Shown piece by piece: positions 11,783 to 40,712 of a DNA stretch of 40,712 nt (its first letter is position 1; every line of letters begins with the position of its first letter). Under the pieces are notes generated by a model, which had not been told where the DNA came from, ran no database searches, and saw only the letters and a program-made list of their open reading frames with translations. Source of the DNA: Dicyema japonicum (lineage: Eukaryota > Animalia > Dicyemida); the NCBI GenBank assembly GCA_011109175.1, contig RDEW01000081.1:108019-148730 (forward strand). The letters are read 5' to 3'. The position numbers were made by a program, and so were the translations under genes.

Positions 11783-13090
11783 TAATTAAGTGATCTCGAA
11801 GGCCTCAATCAGAATTTTCATTTTCTCCTCGTGCGCCTTCTGGGATCCAACACAACTTCTCTGTGGGTGAAGTGGTTTCGGGAATAGGAATTGGAGAGGG
11901 GTGATGTATACCCTTCTCATAAGACACGTCGTGACTGTGTATTGTTGAGAGTTGCACTGCTTGCACAGGGTAGCAAATCCCTTTCCATTTTGTCGGATTA
12001 GGTCTTCAAGTGATGAGGGTATTAGTTTTTCTAGTTTCCCGAGATTACTAATAGTAGTGGCTGTTAAGGCCTGAATGTTGAGGATGTTTTGTTCGTTCGT
12101 CCAGGACAGATTGATTCCCCATGACGTATAGGCATAGCTGACAGATGGCTCAATGAATTGTTTGTACAACAATTTCAAAACTGGGAAAGGGGTTTTAATG
12201 CCGAAAATAATTTTGATTATCCCTAGCTTTCTTGAGCAGCTCCCAGAGACAGCGTAGAAGTTAGATGAAAAAGACATGTTTGTGTCGAAGGTGATCCCAA
12301 AGATTTTCAGTTTCTTCGTGAAAGGTATTTGTCTGGTTGATAAATATATCCACTGTCATTTGTCCAAGTCGTTTGTCTGAGGTAAATAAGGAAGAAGATT
12401 TTTCAGTAGATATATCAAGCCGGTTGTAATTTAGCCAAATTTGAATCTTGTGAAGGTATTCTTGTAGTTTTTGATCGCGGGATCCGATTAATAAGTCATC
12501 AGCATATGATAGGATGAAATCGTCTTTATTATCGGGTTGTGGTAAATCGGACATAAGTTAAATAAGGCAGGTGATAAAGGGGAACCTTGTGGGATACCAT
12601 TGGGTAGTAATCTTGATTTGGTCCCATCCATGTATACCCGGGCCCTTCTTCCATTTATGAAATTAGCAAGCCAAAGTTTTATATTGAGGTTGACGGGGAG
12701 AACAAACAAATTCCGGGTTAGAATTTTCCTTGAGACAGACTCAAAGGCCTTTTGTAAATCGATCGAGCAAACGACTGTTTTGAAGTGACGAGGATTTGTG
12801 TTAAAGCCTCCAATGATAAATTGGTTGAGGGAAGTTAGGTGGGTAAAAGTTGAATGACCCCTTCTGAATCCATGTTGTGAGGACGAAAAAGGAAGGGACG
12901 GGGTTATAAAATTAAGAATCAATTTTTACAATAACTTTGATAAGATGTATAGTAAAGAAATTGATCGAAATGATGCAGGATTGTTTTTAGGCTTGTTAAC
13001 TCTCGCCTGGGAATTAGCGGTTGTAACTTGCGTCGATCGATTGCGTGTTGCAATTATAAAGATGAATTTTTTAAGACCCAAGACCACGGT
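11783..13090 (-). mobile_element. I/Jockey-like LINE, RT domain to 3' end, frameshifted
   Basis: SFRSISLLYILSKLL, QHGFRRGHST, SIDLQKAFESV, GIPQGSPLSPALFNL and SYADDLLI are present. The ORF ends EIT* and is followed by a (TAT)-rich tail. Confidence 0.92.
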
Positions 13091-13099
13091 AAAACCAAA

Positions 13100-13555
13100 A
13101 CTAACTATCACGTGATCCCGATGCGTTCCTTCCAAAATCCTCATTCTTGCCCGGTTCTCCTTCCTCGTACCCACACAAGCTCGTACTGGGCGGCTGACTG
13201 TATTTGCAGGGCCACCTTCCCGCATGCCGGAGTTTTGTTTTTCGGATCTTAGCTTCCATGAGTAGTGGGTCGACTGTTGATCCATTACGTGGGCAAAGCA
13301 TACTGATTGTTTTCTGGTGTATCGAGTTGACTCTTTGGACCATAGACTCCGATAGCGCGAATCTCCATGCAACGGAGGCATGCTCAACGGCAGGCGCGAT
13401 TGTTTGTTGGTAGAGGGTAGAAACGGAAAAGTCCATGTTCCTCGTGGTCCTCCGGACAAGGGCGCGTAAAACGTTAACTTTCTGGAGGCCCCTGGTAATC
13501 ATGTCTTTTGCGTGGGAGTTGAGTAGACTGTCGTACTTGAACATTTTGGATATCC
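13100..13555 (-). mobile_element. Second I/Jockey-like LINE fragment (post-RT region)
   Basis: YDSLLNSHAKDMITRGLQKVNVLRAL...LYQQTIAPAVEHASVAW matches the 'FxxHxxxxxxKAxxxxxxLxxL...LYKxxIxxxxEYAxxAW' pattern. Confidence 0.7.
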
Positions 13556-13640
13556 CGATAAATGAAATAAAATGAAACTTTATTAAATAAAAATAAAAAT
13601 ATAATAAATTTAAATGGAAACGGTTAGTCGTGGTGTGAAT

Positions 13641-15109
13641 ATGAATGAAAGAGATAAAATGTACAAACTGATAATAGGGTATAAAATATAATAAACATTT
13701 TAGCCAATTACTGTTTGATGGTCATCAAGAATTAGCCTTTCAGTTAAATTCTATAGTCCAATCAATGAGAATATTATCTCCATCGGATAGACTATCCCAT
13801 GTAATCTCAAAAGGACTTAAAGAGGAAGAAAAGATTGCCAGCAGTGACAGCCTTAAATTCAAAGAACTTTTCGACGAAGGAATTGACTTTGACAACACCC
13901 TTGAAAGTAATCTTCCTATAGTAATAGATCGTGTTTTGGGTTCATCATTTGAAAACTATGAGACATACTATGTGACCTCACATCGTGACTGTTGTCGAGC
14001 TGCTGCATTTGACTCTTCTGGTATTTTATAATGTGATTATAGGACAACACGTGGCAACTGCTTCAGGTGATTCATCAATAAAGGTTTTAAATGTTGCCAA
14101 AATGTTAAATCGAAATTCAACTGTAGGAGAAAATGAGTATAATCCGGTTGTTAGAAATTTGTACGACCACACTTCAGTATTATTAATTATTTATAGTAGG
14201 AAGTGACTTGTGTTAAATTTCACCCCGAGTACCCCATTTTCTTGCATCAGGAAGTCGTGACAATACTGTCAAGTTATTCGATTACAGCAAACCAATGGCA
14301 AGGAAAGCATTTCGCATGATTCAAGTAATATTTATTTGAACGTAAAGGAAGTGGTAGAAATTATGGATATTGACTTTAATCCTAATGGGGATTATTTAAT
14401 GGTTGCTACAAGTCATCCTACTTGTTTTATATTATTTTATGTTCTAGTAAGATTGTATGATGTTAATACTAATCAATGTTTTGTATCCTCCATTCCTTCT
14501 GATCAACATACTTCATCACTCACTGGGGTATACTTATTCCTTATATGCAGGTTAGTTGGAGTCAATGTGGAAAATATATTGCTACCTGTTCCGTTGATGG
14601 TAATATTGGATTGTGGGATGGAGTTAGTTGTAAACGATTTAATACCTTTAATAAGGCCCATTCGGGACATGTGTTAAATCAGTTGTATTTTCAAAGAATT
14701 CAAAAGTTATTTTATTATAATTGTAGTATGTTTTATCTTCCGGATGTGATGGTATTGTTAAATTATGGGATTTGTCATCATTTCGATGTCTTCAGGCATA
14801 CCGTGGTTTTGGACCTATCTCACCAATTCCATGTGGTGTAGTATTTAATCATAGTGAGGATTATGGTATTTTATAAATTAATGTAGTTTTGGGTATCAAT
14901 AATGAAATAAGATCAATATATTGTTGGGATACTCGTACTGCTCAATTAATTAACACTCAACCATATGGTATAATAATTATAATATTATAGGACATTCTGA
15001 TTCTGTTAGGTTTATTGCTCACTCTAATAAGATTGGGGCTTTTGTTACCTGCAGTGATGATCATCGCTCTAGATTTTGGTGTTCTGATGATTATGCTAAT
15101 TCTATTTAA
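13641..15109 (+). CDS. CSTF1: Cleavage stimulation factor 50-kDa subunit (WD40), 9 introns of 21-25 nt
   Basis: Spliced product [19 protein letters not shown]...[18 protein letters not shown]...[20 protein letters not shown]...[14 protein letters not shown]...WDGVS...FNHSEDY...[11 protein letters not shown] matches CstF-50 throughout. One base is missing near 14671-14675. Confidence 0.95.
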
Positions 15110-16464: not shown

Positions 16465-19400
16465 ATGGAAAATAACCAATCTCCATTTAATTTATATACT
16501 GCTAATTCAAAGGGAAAATCAATCAAAAAAGCAGAATTCCTTAAAATTTTAAAGTCAGATAAAATTGATACTTCAAAAGTGCACGGAAATTGGACTTTTG
16601 TGTCGGAATTCGAACAACCAATTCCCAATTTTAGTCCCGAACTTATCCAAGATTCTGATTTGCCAAGAAAATTTGGGAAATTTCCTAATTCATTACTGCA
16701 TAAACCGATAGAAGAAATTGATCCTTTCATAGAAGATCATGTAACAATTATTACTAATCATTAAGACATTTTTGGTAATAAAAAATAAAGGAAATCAACA
16801 ATTTGTGATAAACAGGTATTCAGCTGCCAAATCATTATATATATTCGACGTATGCAATCCAATTCGTCAGTGGCTAATATACATAAGTACTAATCAGATT
16901 TTTGACATTTTAATAATCTTACTCATTATCGCCAATCTAATATTCCTGGCAATGACTAAATCATATGAAATTGCTGAGTAATTCAATATTTTGTATTTTA
17001 GATATTTTTTTGTTTCAGTTTATACAATTGAAATGATCATTTCCATATGTGTAAGAGGATTTGCGTTAGCTCCGTATACTTATCTCCGAAACCCTCAAAC
17101 AATTATTGATTTTTTAATAGTAGTCATAGCGTATTTTAATAATCAATACTTTTAGATTATTTGAATTAGTTGTACTGAAAATTATACTAAACAACACTGT
17201 CAACATAAATTTCATTAAGGCTCTAAGAGTCTTTAGAGTTTTGAAATTATTAAATTTACTTCCAGGTTATAATATGTAACATTTTAGGAGTGAAACAAAT
17301 ATTATCATCCATTAATAAAGCCCTCAAAATAGTAGGGACATTTTTATTTTATTTTTCATAACTCTATCAATTCTTTCCCTTATTTCATTTCAAATATTTG
17401 GAGGTACATTGAGACAAAAATGTGTCAAAGTTCCTATGTTTCATCTAAACACGTCTCAATGGACTAATTGGGTTCACAATATCAGTATGCTTATATTTAA
17501 CATTAAGGTAATTGGTTGAACATTTCCGGAAATTACTATGTTTGTGGTAATGTCTCAACATCTAAGTAAACTAAATAATTATATTAGAACCTGTCCATTA
17601 AATTACACTTGCCTTACTGTTGGATCAAACCCAAATTTTGGGTTCACATCATTCGATCAGTTTGGATGGTCTATTATCAGCAATTTCCAATTACTTACAT
17701 TAGATTATTGGGAAAATTTGAGTCACTTGGTAGAATATATTATTATTCATAGCTTCAAAGTACTAATGGATATTTCTCTTTCTTATACTGCTTCCCAGTA
17801 GTAATGATTGGTTCACTTTACCTCATTAATTTAATGTTGGCTGTTATTTCTATATCTTACAATGGAGTTGTCAACATTTCTGTTTGTTTTATTTTTATTT
17901 TAAGAAATCAAATTATAACAACAAATTTTGGAGTTATTCTCCTAAAAATGGGGTGATTTATTATAAAAAGAAATTGATTTATGATATTAAAAACCCACCA
18001 AAAATACTAGAAAATCAGAGTTCAGACAAATCCAAAGCAAAAGTAAGCAGTAAAAAACAAAAAACAAAAAATATTCAGTCTGACAACGTAGGAGTTGTTA
18101 GAAGAAAGTTTAAAAATTTAATAGAAAATTCTACTTTTGATATTATAATTGCAATCATAATATTTTTAAACACACTATCAATGGCTTTAGAACATTACCC
18201 AGAATCAGAAGATTTCTCAAAATATCAAAAATATTCTAACTACGTATAATTTAGCAAATTTAATTATTGATAGGTCTTCACGGGGTTATACACAATCGAA
18301 ATTATATTAAAAATATATGTTTACAGCCTAAAGTTTTTTATATCAAAATGGAATATTTTTGACTTATCAATAATTGTTGTGGGGTATGTTGAAATTTTAT
18401 TATTTACTGGAGGATCCACGACTCCCTTCAGATTATTAAAACTTGTATGTGTTAATTAAACATTATAGTTGAGAATATTTAAACTCACAAAATCATGGAC
18501 AACAATGCATATGCTTGTAACGACAATGACATCTTCCATCGGACAACTTACCAACATTATTTTAATTCTTTTGATTGTGCTATATACTTTTTCAGTATTT
18601 GGTCTTCACATCTTTCATTCACCGTATAATCATTTTTATGGGACAAGTTTACCACGGTTACTCTTTTTCAAATATCTTAGATGGAACTTTAGCGATTTTT
18701 TCCACTCCTTTATGCTTATATTCCGTATAATGTGCGGTGAATGGGTGGAACCGTTATGGGATTGTATGCAAGCATCTGGGTCCACGTGTATTGCAATAAT
18801 CATTCCTGCACAAATTTTATGCTCTTATATGGTTTGTATTTTACTTTAGTTAAAGATTTTAAATTTGTTCCTGGCATTACTGTTAAATCTATTTCACCAA
18901 AATCAACTCAAAAAAGAAGAAAAGTCTACGATTTTTTGGAATGACATTCGAAACGCCGTAAAATATGCATTTAATTTTAAAAAGAAAGTTATTATTCAAT
19001 TTCTTAATTTAAGATCAAACCACATGCTACGACATCGACTATCAACTCTACAAATTTAAAAATTTCGGACAATCAAATGTCAGATGATTTTGTGGAAAGT
19101 AGAGTTGTAACTTCAAACGCCAAATCTTCAACTTTAAAGAGTTCTGGCAATCAAAAACAAAATAAATCGCAAAATAGAATTTCCAAAATCAGCAATATTT
19201 CAGGAATTTCAATTAGTCCAGTTCCCCAAAATTTACTAAAGCCATGTTTTCCAAGTTTTTTTAGAAGGTATTTATAAAATTTAAAATTAGGATTGGATTT
19301 TGGGACAAAACGATTTCAAAAGTAGAATCAACAATATCAATGATGAAATTCAATAAATTAAGAACTAAAATTTTAGAATTTGTATCAAATAAATATTTTG

Positions 19401-21874
19401 AAGGGTTGATAATAATTCTCATTGGAATAAGCAGTATTCTTTTGGTAGTAATAAATTAATTTGTTGTAGACCTTAGAGGATAAGCATTTCAAACAAAGAC
19501 CAACATTGCAGTACGTTTCCAATATAATAAATGCAATTCTAACTGTTTTGTTTACTACTGAAATGTTTCTCAAAATTATTGCTTTTGGATTAACCAGCTA
19601 TTTTACAACATCATGGACGATATTAGACTTTTTTAATGTCGTGGTTAGGATTACATATAAATTATAGATTTCATGGATTACCTTTAACAATGTTGAGAAT
19701 GCGATATCTTCTTTGAAGTCGTTGAGATCTCTGAGAAGTCTTCGACCTCTTTGCATGATATCCAGATGGGAATCATTACAAGTAGTAAGGAATTTAAAAT
19801 TTTAGATTGTTGTGAACTCACTAATATATTCAATTCCATCAATTATTAATGTAATGGTTGTTTGTTCGATTATATGGATTATTTTTGCCATAATGGGGGT
19901 TCAACTTTTTGCAGGAAAATTTTACAAATGTACAATTGATGGAAACAAAATGAGTCACACATATTCAATAATTTTGAATGTGACCGACAAAAATTCTTGT
20001 CTGGGACTAACTCAACAATTTCTCACTCCACAACAAAGGTCAATAATAAACGGAGGAAATATCAGTTGGAAAAATTCTAAAATAAATTTTGACAACGTTA
20101 TCGAAGCTCTTTTATCCCTTTATCAAATAGTTATCAATATATTTATTGTAGGCGACAATCGAAGGTTGGATAGAAATAATGGAGGATGCAGTTGACTCAA
20201 CAGGGGTTTGAAAGATCAAATAATAATTAAGCATATATAGATTGAGAAACAACCACGCTATGAAGCCTATTTGTATTCATACATTTATTTTATTGTTTTT
20301 TTATTTATTGGGAGTTTCTTTTGTCTTAATCTGCTAATCAGTGTTATTATTGAACATTTTCTAACTTTAAAGAAAAAAGTACAATTTAACAAACTGTTTT
20401 TAGTTTGAACAAAGTCGACTTGTTAATGCAATTACCAATAAATATCAAAAATATTTTTTTCAAATAATAAACGAGTATTTTGAAAGAAAGCCTAAACAAT
20501 TTTACAAATATCCTAAAGTAATAATAATAATAATTTTAGAATAAAATCTCCAAAGTAGTGAGACATTTGGTTAAATCTAAAATTTATAATATTGGATGTT
20601 TAGTCATTATATTTTCTTTCATATTAAACGAATCATTCAGATCTTATGACATTGCATACAAATATAATGACTTTTCCACTTTCAAAGCATCAGTAATAAA
20701 CTATCTAAGAATTATTTTCGCTTTTATCTTTATATTAGAAACTAGTCTAAGAATTGTGGGTCAAGGAACTGGATATTTTCAAAATTATTATGAAATAATG
20801 GATTTTATTGTAATAATTATTAGCACATTGGGTAATTTATTTTATTAATAAATAGGACTTATTTTGAGATTTTACTTAAATCATAATGAGATTCTATCAC
20901 GTGTGTATATTGAATTAGGGTCACTGAGAATAATATTTTCAATCCATCGAACTCATTTATTAGACACCACTAAATTTGGAAGACAACTAAAAACACTGGT
21001 AACTCCATTAATTGTAAGTCTTCCTGAACTGATAAACGTGGCAATACTCTTGTTAACAATTATTTTCATATATTCGATCATTGGAATGATTTTATTTGAG
21101 GAGTTAGACCATGTTGGAAGTCTTAATGATGTCATCAATTTTGATACATTTCCTTCAAGCTTTTTCTTATTATTTGAATTGGGATCCTCTGCGTCTGGTT
21201 GGAATGAAATACTAAGTGCAGTTTTGGAGGGAAATGAAATATGTTCAATAAAATCAGGACATAGCTGTATTAGCAAAAGTTTTATTGTAATATATTTTGT
21301 ATCATTTGTATTTGTTACGAAAATTGTGATTATAAACACATATGTTGCCATTATTATTAATAATTTCGAACATTCATATGACCAACAAAATCTGATAGGA
21401 ATCAGTCATTCAACAATATCAAATTTCGATAGAACATGCAACAAATTTACATCGAAAGACAAATATCATCATATTGAATTAAAATACTTACCGAAAATAA
21501 TAAACAGTCTTTGTCATCCGTTTAGGATCCCACATCCAATGCCTTCAAAATAGCTTTAATGAAATTACCAATTTATGAAGGAGATTTAATTCACAGAATT
21601 GATTTGTTTGAAAAACTTGTACGCTGTCATTTCGATACGATTGGTACACATCATACAAATAGTAAAATTGAACGCATATTAACACGTCTTAGAAACAATA
21701 ACATTCCCACCACTAAACTTTTAAATGTTTTAAAAATTTTAATTTTAGGTTAAATCTGATACTCTCCGCAGAAGAAGAGAAGAAACAGCAGCTAAAATTC
21801 TTCAAAACTCATGGAGAAAGTTTCGCAATATACGATTACTCAAACAATTTGCATCTAAAAAATTAAAAAAATAA
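16465..21874 (+). CDS. Four-domain voltage-gated sodium-channel family alpha subunit, Nav2-type, ~1,600 aa, about 23 micro-introns
   Basis: Has PIEEIDPF, four S1-S6 repeats, pore loops TLDYWE / CGEWVE / TIEGWI / [25 protein letters not shown], and a C-terminal IQ motif [12 protein letters not shown]. Intron positions match those of animal SCN genes. Single-base deletions in homopolymers occur at ~17350 and ~21548. Confidence 0.95.
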
Positions 21875-22468: not shown

Positions 22469-23260
22469 CAGGTGTAGGCAAAATCTGGCTCGCAAGTCTA
22501 AAGTAGGCTCTTTCATTTAGTTATATTTATACTCATTTATTTGTTTTTATATATGATTTTTTAAAATTATTTGAAAATTTACATATTTAATCGTAAATTT
22601 TGCTTATACATTATAACCTATCTCGGCTGTCGGCAAAAGGTGGCATTTTCATTTTTTAATTATTTTTTTAATAATCAAAAATTTTTACAAGTTTAACATT
22701 AAATTCTGGTTATACATTGATATATGCCCAACAATAAAAAAATTAATAATACAAGACATTTTCAATCTGAATGGACTGAATCTTTCGCACTCACTTTTAA
22801 CTCAAAGCAACTACCAAAATCCCCATTTGTCAGGAAACTCTGAACCAAAATAAAAAATCAACTTTGGAGAGGCATTTTAAAACAAAGCATGCGAATTTAG
22901 CAAAAATATCTTTGCGACTCACGAAAGAATGTTGGGGAAGAACTTTTTTATGTGTCTCGAGGCTTCCTTAGACAAGAACATTTGGCATTATTGCCTCTAA
23001 AAAGTCAAACTCGTGGTCAAGATATTGTCGACACAGTTGTAGAATATCTGGAAACGAATTTTATTCCACTTAATAGAATCGTATCAATTTCAACTGACGG
23101 TGCTGCAAGCATGCTAGGATCGAGAAAGGGATTTATCACACTAATTAAAAAGAAAATTGACCATGAAGTGATTACGCTACATTGTCCACCAAGAAACATT
23201 ATCTGCACATACATTTCCAAAAGAAATATTAAAACCGATGGAATTGATGATTACTAATTA
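22469..23260 (+). mobile_element. hAT (Charlie/SPIN/Buster-like) DNA transposon, left end plus deleted transposase
   Basis: TIR-like CAGGTGTAGGCAAAATCTGGCTCGC...GGCTCTTT is preceded by 8-bp GTCTAGGC (Charlie-type target). Transposase pieces NKKSTLERHFKTKH and LALLPLKSQTRGQDI...VSISTDGAASMLG...LHC follow. No right TIR was found. Confidence 0.85.
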
Positions 23261-24084: not shown

Positions 24085-24239
24085 ACTATGACAATTAAAA
24101 CCTTTATTAATTGGAAAATCTAAAATGCCAAAGTGTTTCAAAAAATATGATTATCGGTGTTCGAGACCGCAAACAGACCTGTTATTGCTCACTTTCAAGT
24201 GTTTTAAACACTGATCCCTCTAAGTTGAACGACTAAAAA

Positions 24240-24700
24240 CAATCAGTGGAAAAAAATGATTGTAAGACAGAGGGATTTACGTCCCATAACCTGTATTCCG
24301 ACATTGTACAAAATTGTCACCAAATTTGTTAATTCTAAACTGTCTGATTTCGTGGACGCATTTGGTTTAATTTCAGATGATCAACTTGGGATGAGGAACA
24401 ATGTCAGGGTACCAAAGAGCAGGCCCTTATTAATCAATGCTCAAATAAGGAGTACAGAAATAGCCTTTACTCAGCTTGGATCAATGTGAAGAAAGCCTTT
24501 GACTCTTTTGATAAAGATTTGTTGTTCCACATATTGTATTGTTCTGGAATCTCACTTTGGATTGCTAACTTTGTGAAGAGCATAGTTAAGAAGTAGACAG
24601 TCAATCTTCATATTGATGGTAGAAGAATTGGGTCAGTAAGGCTAAGCCGTGGAATTTGCAGGGAGATTCATTATCTCCGCTACTATTTGTTATGGTAATC
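24240..24700 (+). mobile_element. R4/Dong-like non-LTR RT fragment
   Basis: LRPITCIPTLYKIVT, DQLGMR...GTKEQALI, WINVKKAFDS and QGDSLSPLLFVM, broken by frameshifts. Confidence 0.75.
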
Positions 24701-25149
24701 GCCCTCGACGTCCATCACATCCAAGAAACGCTCTAATCCAAACGAGAAATAATAAATTCTAAAGACAACCATTTGACGTAACTGAAAGGATATTTAAACT
24801 GAATAAAGAAATCATGCGGAACATCACAAAAAACAACAAATATCATTGGGAAGACGTCTCAGAAAAGATACTTCTTCCATTGTATTACCCCAGGATCACT
24901 GGGTCAGAGAAAAAATAAAAGTTATCACCTAAATGTTTCCAGTCAAGGGAGAGGACGATTCCAGCGGAGTCGAGAATCCTATACAGCTTTTCTCATTGGA
25001 CATGACATCAAATTTTTTACATGTTTATAGATATTTCGATGTGAAAAAGTTGGAATTCGGTAGACTGGCCGCTTTTAAGAATTTTGTAGTTTAATAAGAT
25101 TTTCAATGGATCTTGTGTTCAGGTCCAATCAACTTTACTGCAGTCTCCT

Positions 25150-25620
25150 GGAAATCACATAGTTTCAATGACGAGGAGTGTGAAATATGCATTACCCATG
25201 ATGGACCTGCATACGTTATCGTGGGTCGGATAAATTATTCATAAACTGTGTTGCAATGTGTCGAGTCTCCGCTTCGAGAGTCACAGTTCAAGCATTTGTT
25301 GGGCGAACTGAGTAACTGATTGAATGCTTCTGTCATTGGAAGCAAGAATAATGTCGTCGGTTCATTAAAGGTTTGTGGCATTTTGTTATGTAGAGGTTGA
25401 AGAGTTGTGATAACAGTGGGGAGCTTTGGGAAACTCCATTTGGAAGGCAGCGAGATCTTGATTTTATGTTGCTGTAGAGTACTTGTGCTCGTCTTCCATT
25501 TAGGAAATTTCCAAGTTAAAGCTTCAAGTTCATGTGGGTGTTCGTTACAAATATCTTCTTTGTAAGGAGTTTCCTGGAGAATGATTCAAATGCTTTTGTA
25601 ATGTCCACGATTATAAGTAC
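25150..25620 (-). mobile_element. I/Jockey-like LINE RT fragment (same family as 11783-13090)
   Basis: VDITKAFESFSRKLLTKKIF and LPNGVSQSSPLLSQLFNLY. Confidence 0.75.
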
Positions 25621-25669
25621 TGTCCTTTGATGTGATATTATTAAAAAGCACTTTCACAGAACCAAAGAA

Positions 25670-26140
25670 CGTTATATTAACTAAGGTCCCGTTTGTGCTA
25701 CACGTTTCAAAATCTGCTTCACTAGGCGTCTCCGTCGCCTTCTGCTTTGCGCATCTGTCCTTAGATCTTCTAGGTCTTCTGCAGATTTAAGTTTTCTTCC
25801 AATTCCATTAAGATCGTTAAGAGCCACTGGTAGAGTGACTCTAAGCCTTCCTCTGAACGATGGTCTGTTCTCATTGTTAAAGTAATTGTCCATTATTATA
25901 TTTGCAGAAGCGTTTATGTCCATTCTAAGCACGTGCCCAAACAGTCTCCATCTTGATTAATAATGTCGATGCTTATTGGCCTCGATTGTGCCACAGAGTA
26001 TAATTTCTTATTTTAAATCTTCTTGGGCTAACCTAAGCCCACTAAATTGAGTAATTGTTTTCGATGAAATATATCCATTTTTTGTGACCCCCCATGTACC
26101 CGAGTTGTACATAAGCACCGGCTTTATATATGAGTTGTAT
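25670..26140 (-). mobile_element. RTE-like LINE 3' fragment
   Basis: YNSYIKPVLMYNSGTWG, RWRLFGHVLRMD and FRGRLRVTLP...KLKSAEDLEDLR. Confidence 0.85.
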
Positions 26141-26189
26141 AGTCTTTTTCTTTGATTTCATTTTATTAGTTTTCGTAGACTCCATATCT

Positions 26190-28235
26190 TCTCTATTTTC
26201 TGATACATAGCAGAACTTTACATCATGTCCTCACTATCATTAAGTATTTGGCGGGTGAATGACAGGATCTGCGTAATACAGATCCGTCTAAACAACCAAT
26301 GTTCCCCTAAAAATACAATTATAAATGTATATGCACCACACTGTGGAAGAGTGGCGAAAAACCTGGATGAATTCTACTCAGCATTATCAAAGACGTATAA
26401 TGAATATGAGTCGTCCTCACTTATATTCATTGCTGGCAATCTAAATGCGAAAATTGAAAAAAAAGAACTCAGAAGATACCTTCATGGGAAGACACGGACG
26501 TGGGAAAAGAAACTTGCCTGGGACCATACTTGGCCATTTCTGCACGGCAAACAAACTGTTCTTGTGCAACACCGCATTCTCTCATCGTGCATGCCACATA
26601 ACCACTTGGATGGCGAACGAAGAAACCCAGAAGGAAGACTAGTCCCTATATACGACCAAATTGATTATATGCCTGATCAATGACAAACGCTCTCTTATAA
26701 ACGCACGCTCATACGAAGGTTCAACAACTGTCAGCGATCACAGAATGGTTATTGTCACCTTCAGCCTGGCGAAACATGGTATCAAACATAAGTAACATAA
26801 CAACTTTACAAACATAATATGAGAATACAAGAAATGGATACGGAAAACTGATCTCTCATCCAGATACAATAAAAAATTACAAAAAATACATCTGCTCTTA
26901 TGTGAAGGACCTAACAGTAGGAATTTCGTAGGATCGCACACAGTATATAATAAACGAAGCAGCGAGCCAGTACCTCGGCACGCGGGAGATGGCCAGTAAA
27001 GGTCGGACGATACATACAGAACTAGGAGTTATCAAAGGAGTTAAAAGAAATCATACAAAAACTAAACGAAAAAGACAAGAGAAAAGCCTTCAGGGGCAGA
27101 GGGACCAAATCCGTAGAAAAATCAGGAGATTGAACAAGACACTCCACCAAGAAGAACTGCTTTGCAAAATCAATCAATTATCCAAACTAAAGACAATTCA
27201 CAAATGTATATGACCGCTCATTTACTACGCACACAAACCGGAAGGAACGGATAATCATCAAAGACAAAAATGGCAGGACATTACTGAGTACTGAAGAGCA
27301 AGCGGAGGTAATTGCAACACATTTTGAGAAACTTTTCAATGTGACTACAGCAATCCCCCATTCAAAGGAAAGCCTAGACCCTTGAAAGAACCAACTACAG
27401 TTTTGGAAGTAAAAACAGCATGTCAAAAACTAAAAAATAACAGAAGCCCTGGACCAGATAGGATAAACCAAGAATTACTAAAATACGGCCTGACCCCTTT
27501 TTAAAAAAATCGCTACACTACTAAATGAAATGTTTTCAACTAACTCAACCTTGCCCCTGGGAACAGGATTACTAATACAAAAACCCAATAAACCCAAAGG
27601 ACCGGTTGAAAACTTACGACCTATTATATTATCAAATTCTCTATGGAAAGTCTCAGCTAACATTGTATTGGAACAAATAAAATGACCCGCCAATGACTAT
27701 CTACTCGAAAGTCAAAGTGGGTTCAGAGAAGGAAAATCAACAGCTGATGCAGTCTGGAGTCACAGATGGAGATGTGCAACACATTAAAAATATTGCAATG
27801 CCACCACATTCTGGGAATAGATCTATCAAAAGGAGTCTAAGAATGATCCAAATCCTTCTATCTAACACAGAACTCCTTGTGAGAGTTGGAAAAATCTACT
27901 CTAGAAAATTTGAAACAAACACACTCCCTCTCTCCGCTTCTATTCACAATATACTTGGAGGCCGCTATGAAAGAACTGAGACCATTATACCAAGGAAAAA
28001 TAGAAGTTTTTTATGCTGATGATGTCGACCTAATCTCTGAAGACAAAGAACTCCTGGAACATGTACTAGAAAAAGCACCAGATATACTTGGGAAATGGTT
28101 TTTCACCGTGAACAGAGAAAAAACAGAAGGGACAGAAATAAGACGAATGAATAACTCACTCGAAGAGAAATGGAGACACACAAAGAAACTTACATTCTCC
28201 CATGAGGTTGATATTGTGGCATCACCCACAAGTTG
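26190..28235 (+). mobile_element. RTE-like LINE ORF (APE endonuclease + RT), multiply deleted and frameshifted
   Basis: APE motifs INVYAPH, AGNLNAK, QIDY and SDHRMV; RT motifs SPGPDRI, LRPIILSN, QSGFREGKST, LSPLLFTIYLE and FYADDVDLI. Confidence 0.92.
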
Positions 28236-29716: not shown

Positions 29717-30082
29717 TTAATTAGAAAGCCAGTTATTAATATGATTGATAATGCCTTCTATTTGTTCTCCACTAAATCTATATTCAATCATTTCTATTAT
29801 GTTGTATAACTCAACTTCACTTCGAGGCATTAAATTGACTATCATCATAATTTCTGCTTTTGTTAACTCAAATTGATTGAGAGATTCAACAAATGACAAC
29901 AATTTATCAACGTGAATGGTATTGGGAGTTAGTTTCTTGACGTAATCCTTAGTGTTGTGAAGAATAGCTGATATATTCTTTTCTTCTTTAAGTATTTTCT
30001 TCTCAATACGGGAGATATTCTCCAAAATGGCCATAACTTCAGCGTTGGTTACAAAATTATCTTGTACTTTAATAATTTTCAT
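29717..30082 (-). CDS. CRCP: RNA polymerase III subunit RPC9/C17 (CGRP-RCP), intronless, 121 aa
   Basis: MKIIKVQDNFVTNAEV...LTKAEIMMIVNLMPRSEVELYNIIE...RFSGEQIE matches the Rpb4/RPC9 pattern (SNYEV; LTKAEKLQLLNHRP; EERLTEEQIE). The open frame is intact. Confidence 0.85.
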   Translation of the reverse strand: MKIIKVQDNFVTNAEVMAILENISRIEKKILKEEKNISAILHNTKDYVKKLTPNTIHVDKLLSFVESLNQFELTKAEIMMIVNLMPRSEVELYNIIEMIEYRFSGEQIEGIINHINNWLSN

Positions 30083-30148
30083 AACAACAATCAATCACGT
30101 ATTTTAAATAATAATTAAAAAATAAATTTATTACTTAGTAACTATAAT
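30083..30148. promoter_or_regulatory. 66-bp divergent (bidirectional) intergenic region between CRCP and IQCK
   Basis: Head-to-head ATGs at 30082 and 30149; contains TCACGT. Confidence 0.6.
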
Positions 30149-31062: not shown

Positions 31063-32005
31063 TTAATCACTATTTTTAATAGGAGAACCACCATTAGTTA
31101 TATCACTGGTCTTGTCTTGTCTCATTGAATCTCTATTAGACCCACTACGAGATCTGCTAATACTTGCCCTTTCCTTCGATGATTTACGACTCACTGAACG
31201 AGATGATGAACTACGAGAACGACGACGTTTGTTTCTCGATCTAATTGGTGTCCTACTACGAGAATATGAAGATCCAGAACGATCTCTAGAATCTCTATTG
31301 TCATCCTCCTTCACTCTAATATAAGCAGTGTCCCCCTAAAATCACAACACCACAAACCTTATGAGAACGAAACTTTGAGTCATTTAATTTTTTAACAGCA
31401 TGTGACATATCCTCCTTCCTAATAAAAGAGACGACACCTTTTCCTCCTCCAAATACATCAGCATAGGCAATATCCCCACATTCTCGGAAGTGGTCTTTCA
31501 AATCTTGCCAACTTCCAGTCGGTGGTAGTCCTACAAGTGGTAAAACAAAGATACCAGACACAAGAACAGAGTTCTTAGATCTTCTTGGTACAAAACCTGA
31601 TGACCTCTCAGAATATTTGTTGGTATATGATCCCTTAGGGAACTCCACCCGAATCCTGTAGCCGTCGAAGTAGTATCCATTCCTCCGTCGAACAGCATCA
31701 TCCGCAGCACTAGAATTGTCTCCGTAAAAGCAAAGTAAATATATTCCTCCAAGTAATCCTCACAGAAATGTCAGAATCCTGAAAGGACGTGAGTTTATAG
31801 CATAGCCAACAGCATGACAAAAACGCACTTACTGTCTATGGTCCATCTCTACAAAGGCGAATGGAAGACCACGCCCATTTCGAGGCTGCTTGATATCAAC
31901 GCTCACCACTCTTCCGTATTTTCTGAAAATATCCTCAATCTCGTATTCCTTAATGCTGGAGGGAAGATTTCCAACGTACAAACGGCAATCATTTCGGTAA
32001 GACAT
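31063..32005 (-). CDS. SRSF1: SR splicing factor SRSF1/SRSF9 (ASF/SF2)-like, 3 introns (123, 24, 22 nt)
   Basis: RRM1 LYVGNLP...FAFVE...DDAV...[14 protein letters not shown]2 with the diagnostic SWQDLKDH and [14 protein letters not shown]|GDTAYIRV, and a C-terminal RS domain. Intron positions match animal SRSF1. Confidence 0.93.
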
Positions 32006-34168: not shown

Positions 34169-36330
34169 TTAACATTCCATCCGTAGGACGTGTCCAAACA
34201 ATCTCCATCGGGCCTCCACCACATCCCAAGTCACAGGTCGCGTTGAGCACTTTCGGTACAGTGCCTCATTGTTGATCCGTGTCGGCCATTGTACCTCGCA
34301 TAGTATTCGTAATTGCCTTCGGTGGAAGGAGTTAAAATTTTTGGTTTCTGAGACCGAGATCCCCCAGCAGGAAAAGTTATATAGCAAGACCAGCTTCACG
34401 AAAGCATTATAGAGGCGCAAACGAAGCGCGATCGTATACCACAAACAGCAAAGGGGAAAGGGAGTCCCCCTGGGGGGTATCCACAGTCGTCGAAAAATTT
34501 CTGAACGACGTACTCTCAACTCGTACCGTCAGTTCTGTATTCGACAATAAAACTTCTATCATCCTGACAGAATCCCTATTAAGGAATCCCCGCAAAACAT
34601 CAAAGAGATTTCCTCGGTGAACTGTGTCGAAGGCTCTCGACATGTCGATATCCAAAATTGTAGTCGCACTCTCAAATCTTTGGTAAGTGGCACAACGCCA
34701 CTTATGCCCCAGACCACATCAGTAGTAGATCTGCCTGTCCTGAATCCACTGTGGCACGATGACAGGAATTCATTCACAGGCTTTTGCACAAGATCCAGCA
34801 CCACCAGAGCAAGGACCTTTCTTAGCGTATTTAGTAGGATGACTGAGTGCAGGTTTTCCACAGGGCCCGCCCTTTTATTCGGTTTTTGAATCGGCACCAG
34901 AATTCCTTTGCCCAACGGAAGAAAGTCGTTAGTTGCAAACATTTGGTTTAATACTTTGCCCACGATTTACACCTGGGTTTTGGGGTTGTACTTATGTAAC
35001 TCAGACGAGCGATTACACTTCAGTCTCTCTATTGCTTTCATAACTTCTCCCACCGTGATTTTATTTACAAGATTTCCTGCATTACCAGTGATTAGGTCCA
35101 CCTTTTCCCCGTCAACTTCAAAGAGTTTTTCAAAATGAGCAGCAATAAGTTCGGCTTGTTCCGTAGCGTCAAAAATCACATTCCCTGTTATCCTGAATTT
35201 TTAGTATGCCCTTTTGGTTCCTCCTCTTAAGCAGGCGCATTGCCAAAAACATCTGCCCACAATCCTTTAGATTCTCCACTTCCTTTAGCCTGGCATCCAA
35301 AACGTTCACTTTAATTTTCTGATTTTTCTCTGTATTCTAGTACGTTCCAACTGTAAAAAGCATTTCCTGTCTGTGTTCGTCATGTTTTCTAGCGATAGTC
35401 GAAGATCCTTCTGTTTTGCAGCTAGTGCGGGAACATCAGGGTGGCCCTGCTTGTACCTCGTACGTTGTGCGGCCGCCTCCCAATGTGTTTGTCTGCAACC
35501 ATGTGAATTCTTTCCATTGTATGCGTCCAAGTGACTCCCGGTGGAAGGCCTGATCTATTGCTTGTAGATGATGTTCCATAGATGATCAATAAATATTTCG
35601 ATGAAGTGTGAAAAACATAATCTCTCGACTAGGTATCCTCTCCGTATGACCTGAGATGGCTTTGTTCCTGATGTGCGTGCATAGCGACTTGTAATATCAA
35701 ACAGGGCCACGACGATCTTGTGGTCGCTTTCCACGACGGCCCCTCCGTATACCTCGAGTCCCGTAATAGTGTTCTATTATTATGTCGGCAAAAAATGTAA
35801 TCAATCTTATTGTAAATCATCACATGGCCCCCAGATTCATTTCTTCTGCAGCTCGTCCAGGTAGTCTTATGTCGTGCAACATGCGTAAACGCAGTGTTAC
35901 ACAGGAATAGATCACTGCCCGACAGAAATTTATCACCACAGCCCCTGGCAGGTTCCTGATCCTTCTTCCGTGTCTTCCGATAGTCGACTCATGCTCCCGA
36001 CATACTCATGCTTTAGCATTTAGTCCCGGCAATGAAGACTAGAAAATACGATTCCAATTCGGCATTTGTCCTCGACAGCTGCACGTAGAAAGCATCAAGT
36101 TCGTCCGAATCTTTGGCGACTCGTCCACTGTGAGGTGCATAAACATTTATAATTGAGAAGGGACCTCGAAGTGCGTTTGACCCCAACCAGTATTTGCAGT
36201 ATGCTGATTCTGTCGCTAACACTCCAACAACGACATATTCCACGAACAAGTTTCTTGTGCACGGCAAACCCCTGTCTATAATGTCTTGATGACGATGGTA
36301 TAACAGGTTTCTTTCCCACTCCCTCTTACA
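34169..36330 (-). mobile_element. RTE-like LINE (APE + RT + C-terminus) with internal deletions
   Basis: INVYAPHSGR, NKIDYIFC, SGFRTGRSTTD, DIDMSRAFDTVHR, PQGDSLSPLLFVVY, LYNAFVK and EARWRLFGHVLRM. Confidence 0.92.
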
Positions 36331-36529
36331 TTGAAAGATGTTATTTTAAGCTCCTCCAAGCCCTTTAAGTACGTTTCAGACATTTGTGCAATAGAGATGT
36401 CGTCACCACCTCAACCAATACTTTTTTTGTATTTAAATCAATGCAGAGGGAAAGAGTCGTCTCGCGTACCCTGTATCGTGCGGATGGTTCTAAAACCTCG
36501 GAACCGGCTGAAATAGCGAGCATCTTTGC

Positions 36530-37670
36530 AGGTAGCTTTGGAGCAGTCACTGCAGTTCGACCGGACAAATTCGTCGAAAGGTCTGCTCGCCAAAGTATTG
36601 AGGACGTCATCTTTACGGAGAGGCGCAAGCGAAGCCACTTTCGGGGGAATCTAATATGATGTATAACTGAGGAGGAGGTCCGGTCCGCAATTAGAAAATT
36701 GAAGAACAACGCACTGGGCCAGGACAAGATCCCCATGGCCCTTTTCAAGAAAGGGCCTGCAAGTCTTCTAGCGACCTTTGTAAGGTTGTACAAAGGTAGC
36801 TTCAGGTTGGGTTACGTTCCTAGGCATTGGAAGGAAGCAGAACTGGTTTTTGTAAAAAAAAAACCAGGAAATCCTCCTGAAGACCCTAGTAGCTACCGGC
36901 CTATAAGCCTGTTGTCTGCCGTTGCTAAAATCTTAGAGAGAGTGATATACCAGAGATTAACCCAGGAATGCATAATAAGAGACACCCTCTCGGACCTTCA
37001 GATGGGATTCCGTGAGGGGCGTTCCTGTGGGGACTGCTGTCTATGCGGACGACATAGTACTCTGGGATCACTCGTGGAAACCAGATGTGGCGTGTCGGAG
37101 GATTCAACTCGCTGTCGATGAAATCATACGCTGGTGTGGGAGCAGAGGACTCAGGCTGAGGCCCGAGAAATGCAGGTTATTAGTTTTTGGCCCCCCTAAG
37201 CGGTCTAATAATTTAATGCCTTGAGTGAACATCTATGGGGTACCTATAGAGGTCACTACCTTGGAGTGACGAGCTACCTTGGAGTGACGTTCAACTCCAA
37301 GTGTAGTTTCCAGGAGCACACCGCCCTCGTTAAGAGGCGGGCTGTGCAAAGACTAGGAGCGTTGAGGGCTTTTCAGCTGAGCCGCGATGCCTGGGCCAAA
37401 GTGTTCAACGCCATGGTGCTGCCTATGCTCACTTATGGTGCGCACTCCTGGTATCGCAGTGAGGAACGCGAAAAGTGCCTCACGAACCTTAGGAAGGTTC
37501 GGCGGCGGGCAATACGGTATTCTCTAGGAATGTCTTATAGAGCGCCGCTGCCGGAAAGAGGATAGCCTGATTTTAAGGACCCGGAGGAAGTTATCAAAAA
37601 GATTGAAATTAGACTAAAGAAGGAGGCACGAAGAAGACAACAGAGATGGCACGAAAACGCTAGGGGATGA
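36530..37670 (+). mobile_element. I/Jockey-like LINE RT to 3' end, GC-richer family, RT core partly deleted
   Basis: ITEEEVRSAIRKLK, SYRPISLLSAVAKILER, QMGFREGRS joined directly to AVYADDI, YLGVTF and LPMLTYGAHSW. There is an 18-bp tandem duplication at ~37255-37290. Confidence 0.92.
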
Positions 37671-38799: not shown

Positions 38800-39740
38800 A
38801 TACGAGATGCGCTGAAGAGAAACAGGACGCAGTCCAATAACTCCTATTATTCTATACGTTCACTGAAAACCAAATTATCTGAACTTAATAACAGACTCAA
38901 ATGGAGTCGTCTAGTTGGACGACTTTGTCACAAAAACTCTTGTGCCATATTTTGAAAAACGCTAAGAAAGATCAATAGCCTTACCAATGAGGAGGACTGC
39001 GGAATACCAGCAATGTTTCGGAACCCGCTCGCAAGCTTGCAAACAATATTATGAAGTACTACGTATCGATCAGCCATAAAGATTTTTTTCGCTCTCCACA
39101 CGTTGAACGGCGCGGGCCGCAACAAGAACCGTATTCCACCTTGTTCACCCCCGATGATGTTGACAAGGCTATTAAATTGCTACGTCCCACTATTTCTTGT
39201 AGTCCCGACAGTATTTGTACTATTCACCTCAAACACCTTGGACCTCAGGCACTGGCCATATTATCAAGACTGTACAACGACTCTATCAACTACCATACGC
39301 TACCTAATATATTGAAGAATTCTCTGATTACGCCAATTCTAAAGCCTGGAAAACTAAAAGACGTTCCTTCTTACCGCCCCGTCTCAATAACTTGTGTTTT
39401 ATAAAAAGTGCTGGACAAGCTTGTATTAATGCGTATCTCTCCTGTTCTACAACTACCAGAATTTCAACATGGTTTCAGACCAGACCGTTCTACAACGACT
39501 CATTTGGGTTCTATCTCCCAGTTTATTACTGACGGCTTCAACATGATAATTCACTTACGGACGGCCTTAGTATCCATCGATATACAGAAGGCCTTTGATT
39601 CTGTTCCGAGGAAAAGATTTTTAATTCGAACTTACATCCGAACATAAAGCTATGGTTGAAAATTTTCTGGGCGACGCGGAAGGGTCCGGATTGACAAAAT
39701 AAATTAGCCCACAAGGGTTCCGCGAGCACCTTAAGGTTGG
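38800..39740 (+). mobile_element. I/Jockey-like LINE, EN-RT linker and RT N-terminal half
   Basis: KWSRLVGRL...KTLRKI, FTPDDVDKAIK, ITPILKPGK..SYRPVSI, QHGFRPDRST and SIDIQKAFDSV. Confidence 0.88.
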
Positions 39741-40176
39741 GAACCATTGAATTAGAGAATGAATATGACGGTATTTCCAATGAAATGGAAATAATGATAT
39801 TGAAAGTATTGATTTAATAAATTCGTAAACATTTTTGTATTCGATTATTTTTTTGCATTACAATTTTGTTATGGGCTTATTTTTGAAAAATTTAACATAA
39901 ATTTCATTTTCAGGTAGTTTTCCATACGTCATTACTCATTCGAATAAAAATTTTGTACAATTCTAATCTTTTTACTATTTTTTCACAACAACGGTTTACG
40001 TAAACATGCTCTTCCGAATAGAAAATTAAGTAATTCCCAATTGTCTTTCTACAGACACGCTTGCCAGTAAAATGTTTTATTCAATTTCTCAAAGTGTCCC
40101 AAGAATTTTTAGATTTTTAGATCGCACTAATAAGATTTAATAGAACTTCAATGTCTGTTTTTAAAGCTTTAAAGCT

Positions 40177-40205
40177 TTATAGGGTGTCCGGAACCAGGAA
40201 GTTTA
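40177..40205 (+). mobile_element. Possible Tc1/mariner TIR remnant
   Basis: TATAGGGTGTCCGGAA resembles TA-(C/T)AGGGTGTCC mariner ends. No transposase was seen. Confidence 0.25.
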
Positions 40206-40436
40206 TTAGTGGTTCGATGTTTTTTGAATTTTCTAAGAAAATTTCCGATTGTCGATTTGGAATTTTTAAATATTCTGCGATATCTTTTATCGTCCATTTT
40301 TACCACGAAAGAGCAAGGATATTAACATCTGCTTATTAAACACAAAAAATAAGAACTAAATATTATTATTATTATAAGCAACTACATAGAATCATATAAA
40401 CTATAATTCTATTCGTGCCGCGTCTGAACAATCCTC

Positions 40437-40712
40437 TTAATTAGCCTTTCCCATCCCCTCCTGTCCGATGCCACTACTAAGGTCTTCACCGTCCTTTAGT
40501 TGTCTGGTTACTGATCTCAGGTCACCATTAAGGAATTCCGGAAAAGTTATTCTTGGACGACCTCTGAACTTCTCCCCTGACGTATCGAAGTATTCTTCCA
40601 TGACGACGTTTGCTGGCGTGTCTTGTTCCAATCTGAGAATATGGCCAAACAATCTCCAGCGAGCCTTCATGATCATGGTGCTCAGAGGTCCGGAACCGCA
40701 TCTTCTATATAA
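40437..40712 (-). mobile_element. RTE-like LINE 3' part (continues past the window edge)
   Basis: ARWRLFGHILRLEQDTPANVVMEEYF...FRGRPRITFP. Confidence 0.9.

Follow-up and report, generated by a model that had tools for sequence, protein, structure and literature searches.

A window of 40,712 nucleotides (nt) from contig RDEW01000081.1 of the dicyemid Dicyema japonicum carries on its forward strand, between positions 16465 and 21874, what appears to be a gene that encodes a very divergent channel of four domains from the family of voltage-gated sodium (Nav) channels. No single open reading frame (ORF) spans this region. Rather, three-frame translation read alongside the DNA reveals short open segments that chain across alternating frames, and these can be joined in a model of 23 exons and 22 introns (Table 1). 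The conceptual product is a four-domain protein of ~1627 amino acids (aa), in which an X stands at each of two frame breaks. The Pfam family Ion_trans is recognized on exons of all four repeats, and local blastp against fetched homologues covers residues ~48-1627. Throughout this work, individual exons served as queries for database and fold searches, and the joined conceptual protein was used only with local blastp, MAFFT and IQ-TREE.

All 22 introns exhibit GT-AG ends and compatible phases, and they are only 18-35 nt in length (median 23.5). The splice choice is equivocal at intron 8 (17882-17904), for which longer alternatives are possible, and at the 18-nt intron 11 (18832-18849). The median intron of Dicyema sp. 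is 27 bp (PMC6543705), and introns of under 30 bp have been reported as the norm in just two groups, Dicyema and the myxobolid myxozoans (PMC13644364, PMC6543705). Indeed, D. japonicum is the sole animal outside the myxozoans with introns so short, the medians of myxobolid species being 22-27 bp (PMC13644364). Both lineages lack a nervous system. Contamination by DNA of the cephalopod host is ruled out, as every intron of the channel gene falls within this narrow range of lengths. The G+C content of the window (~36%) can be compared with that of D. japonicum (36.7%) and lies further from that of the myxozoan Henneguya (29%, PMC13644364). The coding sequence of the channel gene itself is 29% G+C (71% A+T), and over the same ~1627 codons its other two frames are interrupted by 119 and 31 stops. 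We therefore concluded that the long open path is maintained and not accidental. An AATAAA hexamer that overlaps the stop codon is a possible polyadenylation signal for the gene, and its location suggests a very short 3′ untranslated region.

The domain IV (DIV) exon matches solved structures of Nav1.6 (1.9e-34), Cav1.2 (9e-29), Nax (1e-19) and NALCN (1e-10), in that order. Similarly, the DII exon matches Nav structures at 1.6e-33 and Cav structures at 4e-9, with no NALCN match at E<=1e-5. A word search of protein collections with the DIV exon returned no match, and HMMER, when run exhaustively with this exon against 1.84 billion representatives, yielded only distant relatives (<= ~39% identity), which are a mix of Nav2 or ‘60E-like’, cnidarian, placozoan and Nav1 proteins. 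Myxozoans are not represented in the best hits that carry names. On the basis of these sequence comparisons, the gene belongs to the Nav family and not to the Cav or NALCN families. Cav1/2/3 channels, whose selectivity filter ring reads EEEE or EEDD, are ruled out by the D in DI and the small residue in DIV. NALCN channels (EEKE or EKEE) are ruled out by a D/E/E/(A or S) ring and by a match of 1e-10 versus ~1e-34 for Nav channels.

All four pore loops lie in one reading path in the assembly as given, at the positions listed in the first-pass annotation of this DNA, except that the DIV motif starts at 21182, one base later than the 21181 reported there. The filter ring is composed of D367, E679, E1100 and a small residue, either A1408 or S1409, and includes no Lys in DII or DIII. 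To compare these loops with those of known channels, we used MAFFT to align the model to 85 complete channels of the four-domain type and, with more care, to a set of 23. E1100 occupies the site where Nav1 channels carry Lys, in agreement with the earlier observation that domain III has E and not K. This loop is located directly 3′ of the intron at 20130-20151. Moreover, in the alignment with 23 channels, the gene carries the Nav2 or ancestral state at seven of the eight sites in the pore loops at which Nav2 and Nav1 differ. The DI loop includes FQL and TLD, where Nav1 channels have FRL and TQD, and the DII loop includes EPLW as in Nav2 channels, where Nav1 channels have E(S/T)MW. Likewise, the E and the W-I-E of DIII and the GWNE of DIV are Nav2 states. 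These character states support a channel of Nav2 grade, meaning one with the ancestral DEEA type of filter.

The DIV loop has a peculiar additional feature. One residue of its SSASGW segment faces a gap in every other sequence of both alignments, and in this assembly the filter loop exceeds the T-S-A-G of its relatives by one residue, a length that is unique among the ~85 four-domain channels. The extra residue had been recognized in the first-pass annotation, which proposed either that Ser occupies the filter position or that the loop is lengthened. Both HMMER and MAFFT keep S-S-A opposite T-S-A and place the gap opposite S1409 (21194-21196), such that A1408 lies opposite the usual Ala. In an AlphaFold model of the DIV exon, built from a 40-row alignment and having a predicted local distance difference test score (pLDDT) of 82, DSSP assigns the end of the P1 helix to G1405, followed by a five-residue loop and a P2 helix that begins with W1411. 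A control model of DIV from the Nav2 channel of Ptychodera, generated by the same protocol (pLDDT 87), has a P1 helix of equal length, the four-residue loop TSAG, and a P2 helix that begins with the corresponding Trp. These paired models favour the second proposal, wherein the DIV filter loop is lengthened from four to five residues between the two predicted pore helices. It should be noted that DEES, DEEG and DEET are natural variants of the Nav2 filter (PMC6259924). A DEES ring is therefore an accepted Nav2 variant, and the unusual part of this filter is the insertion in DIV.

A second departure from known channels concerns the fourth voltage sensor. The S4 segments of DI and DII retain all their charges, and that of DIII is replaced at one position only (Table 1). 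The five core Arg positions of the DIV S4 segment, all of which are retained in each of the 23 other Nav and Cav channels aligned, read R-F-H-H-D, with Arg persisting at the first alone. The linker between DIII and DIV carries N-A-I at the position of the hydrophobic latch, which reads IFM or MFM in Nav1 channels and MFL in Nav2 channels. The II-III linker is short and divergent, and its exons exhibit no match to the Pfam domain Na_trans_assoc (PF06512), even at E<=1. At the C terminus, a putative IQ-like calmodulin-binding motif aligns to the IQ regions of homologues, and its match to the Pfam model IQ_SCN5A_C is weak (E=0.0015, under the Pfam cut-off). The decharged DIV S4 segment, the undetectable Na_trans_assoc domain and the two frame breaks are all features that were absent from the first-pass annotation.

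Phylogenetic analysis likewise separates the channel from Nav1. In a 43-row tree computed with the posterior mean site frequency (PMSF) approximation of LG+C20, the channel is located within the bilaterian Nav clade (97 by the Shimodaira-Hasegawa-like approximate likelihood ratio test) and outside the Nav1 clade (support 100), and the Nav clade that includes it is split from Cav channels at a support of 100. Approximately unbiased (AU) tests were conducted in IQ-TREE on 24 rows and 1256 columns under the LG+F+G4 and PMSF-C20 models, for which p values are given here in this order. The LG+F+G4 tree draws the channel gene toward the root, and in the best PMSF tree it forms a long branch whose sister group comprises all the bilaterian Nav channels. 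A grouping with Nav1 is rejected (0.0019 and 0.0185), and the Nav1 placement that the first-pass annotation had named as the alternative to a Nav2-type channel was thus not obtained. Values for other groupings are 0.52 and 0.815 with all bilaterian Nav channels, 0.036 and 0.127 with core Nav2, 0.0096 and 0.062 with spiralian Nav2, 0.010 and 0.0054 as sister to the channel of the orthonectid Intoshia, and 0.053 and 0.046 with the two cnidarian channels, a grouping that is thus rejected only marginally. The exclusion from Nav1 is robust, and the placement relative to the bilaterian Nav2 clade is probably blurred by long-branch effects. The Nav2-type assignment stands with respect to the Nav2 states in all four pore loops and the position outside Nav1, whereas the AU values for core Nav2 do not establish orthology with bilaterian Nav2 channels.

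The two frame breaks required separate consideration. Upstream of the first, the frame encodes the S4-S5 linker of DI and aligns with the PGLKTIV sequence of relatives, and downstream of it a second frame (17337-17483) matches DI S5 of Nav1.4 (residues 295-338, E=3.9e-6). The DIV ORF that precedes the second break aligns with a Ptychodera homologue through residue 1738, and the piece that follows resumes at residue 1739 of the same homologue. When used alone, this latter piece gave no match in the solved-structure search, and by local blastp it aligns to 55 homologue C termini. No intron fits at either location, and both breaks look like the loss of one base.

An adjacent gene provides a useful comparison. 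The orthologue of CstF-50 that resides upstream of the channel gene carries a 1-nt shift within a WD repeat near 14240, TTCTTGCATC, and by eye another shift is visible near 14670, GGACATGTGTT. These shifts suggest that the erroneous loss of single bases is a general feature of the assembly. Because the neighbouring gene has the same kind of 1-nt shift, assembly error is the likelier explanation for the breaks in the channel gene than is decay of the gene. We put this more likely explanation at about two chances in three, as opposed to one in four for decay.

Taken together, these observations are consistent with a real gene, probably still functional, for a very divergent Nav-family channel of the ancestral DEEA (‘Nav2’) grade, and we assign a probability of about 60% to this interpretation. 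Several observations weigh against it. First, the gene has two frame breaks in the assembly as given. Second, decay could account equally well for the degenerate DIV sensor and the lengthened filter loop. Third, the terminal branch leading to the channel is 1.8-2.0 substitutions per site and its amino-acid composition is skewed, and relaxed constraint is therefore a possible explanation. Fourth, the closest homologues of the protein are only ~30-38% identical, and no close relative is available for a test of selection. Finally, the tests reject or nearly reject a grouping with spiralian Nav2 or a sister relationship to the orthonectid channel (p=0.0054-0.06), a result not expected of a spiralian parasite unless artefacts of long branches prevail.

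The most serious alternative, although we consider it unlikely, is that the channel gene is decaying or recently dead. If so, the two 1-nt deletions would be real and would truncate the protein in DI, and the unusual loop of DIV, its decharged S4 segment and the lost latch would represent damage accumulated under relaxed constraint in a channel that is no longer needed. Consistent with this view are the breaks themselves, the very long branch with its skewed composition, and a DIV S4 segment and III-IV linker unlike those of all 23 relatives compared. Nevertheless, apart from the two shifts, some 1627 codons remain open in DNA that is 71% A+T, whereas other frames accumulate 31-119 stops, and not one of the 22 introns has lost its GT-AG ends or its compatible phase. 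In addition, DI-DIII keep intact S4 ladders, and the pore retains its tryptophans and the D/E/E residues of its filter. Furthermore, a like 1-nt shift is present in CstF-50, a conserved gene that is expected to be essential, which points to assembly error.

Although indel errors occur elsewhere in the assembly, it is very improbable that the extra DIV serine is itself an artefact and that the true loop is of the SSAGW or TSAGW type. Because the errors we observe are single-base deletions, an artefact of 3 nt at this location is not expected, and it would have to be a clean in-frame insertion within non-repetitive sequence (TCT between GCG and GGT). Weaker still, to the point of being hardly credible, is the proposal that the gene encodes a Nav1 (DEKA) channel with a secondary K-to-E change, for while vertebrate Nav1 chains head the matches to solved structures, among which no channel is labelled Nav2, the AU tests reject a Nav1 grouping under both models and the Nav2 state predominates at the discriminating pore-loop positions.

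If the gene is indeed real and functional, then its product might operate as follows. Depolarisation would move voltage sensors I-III, thereby opening a pore with a lysine-free ring. By analogy with cockroach BSC1, fly DSC1, honeybee CaV4 and Nematostella Nav2.1, such a pore would be expected to pass Ca2+ in addition to Na+ and K+. Three reports describe BSC1, DSC1, honeybee CaV4 and NvNav2.1/2.2 as conducting Ca2+ together with monovalent cations (PMC3809514, PMC6259924, PMC10983803), and channels with DEEA and DEET rings conduct Ca2+ (PMC3809514, PMC6259924). With sensor IV and the latch both eroded, fast inactivation would likely be slow or absent, and the extra Ser would be expected to make the filter wider on its DIV side or to alter its shape there. 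The two 1-nt breaks would most likely be assembly errors, and in the dicyemid the channel could serve as a voltage-gated route of Ca2+ entry for ciliated or larval cells. A more specific proposal, which we offer tentatively and at somewhat less than even odds, is that an intact and expressed dicyemid gene encodes a voltage-gated, Ca2+-permeable channel with a DIV filter loop expanded to five residues and a fourth sensor that does not respond to voltage, a pore and gating layout that would be undescribed in four-domain channels.

The channel has much in common with characterized Nav2 proteins, including Drosophila DSC1 (Na channel 60E), Blattella BSC1, honeybee CaV4 and Nematostella NvNav2.1-2.4. 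They share the four-domain Nav architecture, a filter of D-E-E plus a small residue, the FQL/TLD, EPLW, EGW(I/M)E and GWN(D/E) states, the lack of an IFM latch and a putative IQ-like motif near the C terminus. The many short-linker exons are also a shared characteristic, with 22 introns here compared to ~20 conserved Nav intron positions (PMC6259924). Unlike these Nav2 channels, the Dicyema channel has an extra DIV filter residue, has lost four of the five core arginines of DIV S4, and carries NAI in place of MFL. It also lacks a detectable Na_trans_assoc domain, is only ~30-38% identical to its nearest homologues, and is not placed by the trees within the bilaterian Nav2 clade.

Another informative comparison is with the sodium channel OAF68518.1 of the orthonectid Intoshia linei, also a ‘mesozoan’ parasite, which has a D-E-E-A ring and GWNE in DIV. 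In contrast to the Dicyema channel, the Intoshia protein retains full S4 ladders, an ordinary four-residue DIV loop and longer linkers (1932 aa), and it is placed normally among spiralian Nav2 channels. Its annotation reads ‘sodium channel type 4 alpha B’. The Nav1 channels (NavPaS and human Nav1.x) are, among solved structures, the closest in both sequence and fold and share the same domain order and C-terminal domain. In contrast to these, the Dicyema channel has E for K in DIII, has no IFM latch and lies outside the Nav1 clade. Human Nax (SCN7A) and NALCN are four-domain relatives with reduced voltage-sensor charges and atypical gating. They offer an analogy for the decharged DIV S4 segment, although in the Dicyema channel only DIV is decharged, and Nax and NALCN differ in having other filter rings and far weaker matches to the DIV exon than does Nav1.6. 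We also observed 60E-like channels with DEEA or DEES rings in the flatworm Macrostomum lignano and in the chelicerates Limulus, Nymphon and Ornithodoros. A 2018 review counts flatworms and chelicerates among the animals without Nav2 (PMC6259924).

Dicyemids have neither neurons nor muscle, and the first-pass annotation had emphasized the occurrence of such a channel in a probably nerveless animal. This aspect is less surprising than was implied there, since Nav2 channels are known from nerveless animals and from protists (PMC6259924). Specifically, Nav2-type channels are found in choanoflagellates, placozoans and sponges, and also in non-neural vertebrate tissues (PMC6259924), so that the presence of a Nav2-like gene in an animal without nerves is in itself no surprise. 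A survey of dicyemids published in 2019 reported voltage-gated Ca2+ and K+ channels and, taking PF06512 to mark sodium channels, detected no signature of the latter (PMC6543705). The missing Na_trans_assoc domain may explain why no Nav signature was seen in Dicyema by this survey. Our literature search found no other relevant paper on dicyemid voltage-gated channels.

Judged from sequence, what appears to be new is a Nav gene in a group reported to lack a Nav signature, the insertion in the DIV loop, and the combination of this insertion with a decharged fourth sensor. If this is a true dicyemid gene, it corrects the report that these animals have no Nav signature (PMC6543705), and it indicates that divergent Nav genes are poorly marked by the Pfam linker domain. 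Such a gene would also add a predicted depolarisation-activated cation channel to the proposal that neuron-less dicyemids are electrically excitable. If the gene proves to be intact and expressed, electrical excitability without neurons or muscle could be involved, for example, in the control of ciliary beating or of the behaviour of the infusoriform larva. For biophysics, the channel may represent a natural experiment in which a DEEA-type ring has gained one DIV residue, and in which erosion has affected sensor IV and the latch but spared sensors I-III.

Table 1. Positions of the channel gene, its components and neighbouring elements in the 40,712-nt window
Feature	Positions	Strand	Details
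Start codon	16465	+	ATG of the channel gene
Exons 1-8	16465-16740, 16766-16977, 17002-17130, 17156-17265, 17288-17484, 17508-17565, 17588-17729, 17753-17881	+	Channel gene model
Exons 9-16	17905-18243, 18274-18444, 18469-18831, 18850-18987, 19014-19267, 19291-19444, 19470-19643, 19668-19784	+	Channel gene model
Exons 17-23	19806-20129, 20152-20205, 20241-20378, 20404-20517, 20540-20831, 20856-21726, 21749-21874	+	Channel gene model
DI S4	17214-17255	+	All four charges kept (K-R-R-K)
Frame break 1	17335-17338	+	DI S4-S5 linker/S5, between KALKIV and DIFILFF; one base missing in GTAGGGACA
DI pore loop	17685-17720	+	TLDYWE 17697-17714; filter Asp D367, codon 17703-17705
DII S4	18427-18495	+	All five charges kept (R-K-R-K-K); spans intron 18445-18468
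DII pore loop	18721-18768	+	CGEWVE 18733-18750; filter Glu E679, codon 18739-18741
DIII S4	19713-19766	+	K-R-R-R kept, fifth position Cys (K-R-R-R-C-R)
DIII pore loop	20152-20196	+	TIEGWI 20155-20172; filter Glu E1100, codon 20161-20163
III-IV linker	20367-20545	+	Spans two introns; latch position 20425-20433
DIV S4	20924-20983	+	Core Arg positions as given in the text
DIV pore loop	21161-21214	+	GSSASGWNE 21182-21208; filter loop S1406-S1407-A1408-S1409-G1410
Frame break 2	21536-21538	+	C-terminal domain, between FRIPH and NAFKIAL; one base missing in CATCCAATG
IQ-like motif	21788-21841	+	Last exon
AATAAA	21870-21875	+	Overlaps the stop codon
Stop codon	21872-21874	+	TAA of the channel gene
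CstF-50 (CSTF1) orthologue	13614-15100	+	Tiny introns; CSTF1_dimer domain; WD repeats match PDB 6b3x
118-aa ORF	22901-23254	+	Contains ISTDGAASMLGSRKGF
RNA_pol_Rpb4 ORF	29720-30094	-	Single exon; E=2.7e-21
SR-protein gene	31066-31759	-	RRM_1 domain and Arg/Ser-rich tail
Reverse-transcriptase/LINE-like ORF fragments	11789-13721	-	
Reverse-transcriptase/LINE-like ORF fragments	24229-28233	+	
Reverse-transcriptase/LINE-like ORF fragments	34172-37562	both	
RVT_1	36660-37118		
Reverse-transcriptase/LINE-like ORF fragments	38991-40712		

Beyond CstF-50, the window carries an SR-protein gene and an ORF of the Rpb4 family. The latter is very divergent, since a word search with it gave no relative at E<=1e-5. 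The 118-aa ORF downstream of the channel gene gave no Pfam match at E<=0.001, and it appears to resemble hAT-type transposase-derived proteins. The window is rich in retroelements, and many fragments of reverse-transcriptase or LINE-like ORFs flank the channel gene; these retroelement stretches are 38-45% G+C, compared with 25-29% within the channel gene.

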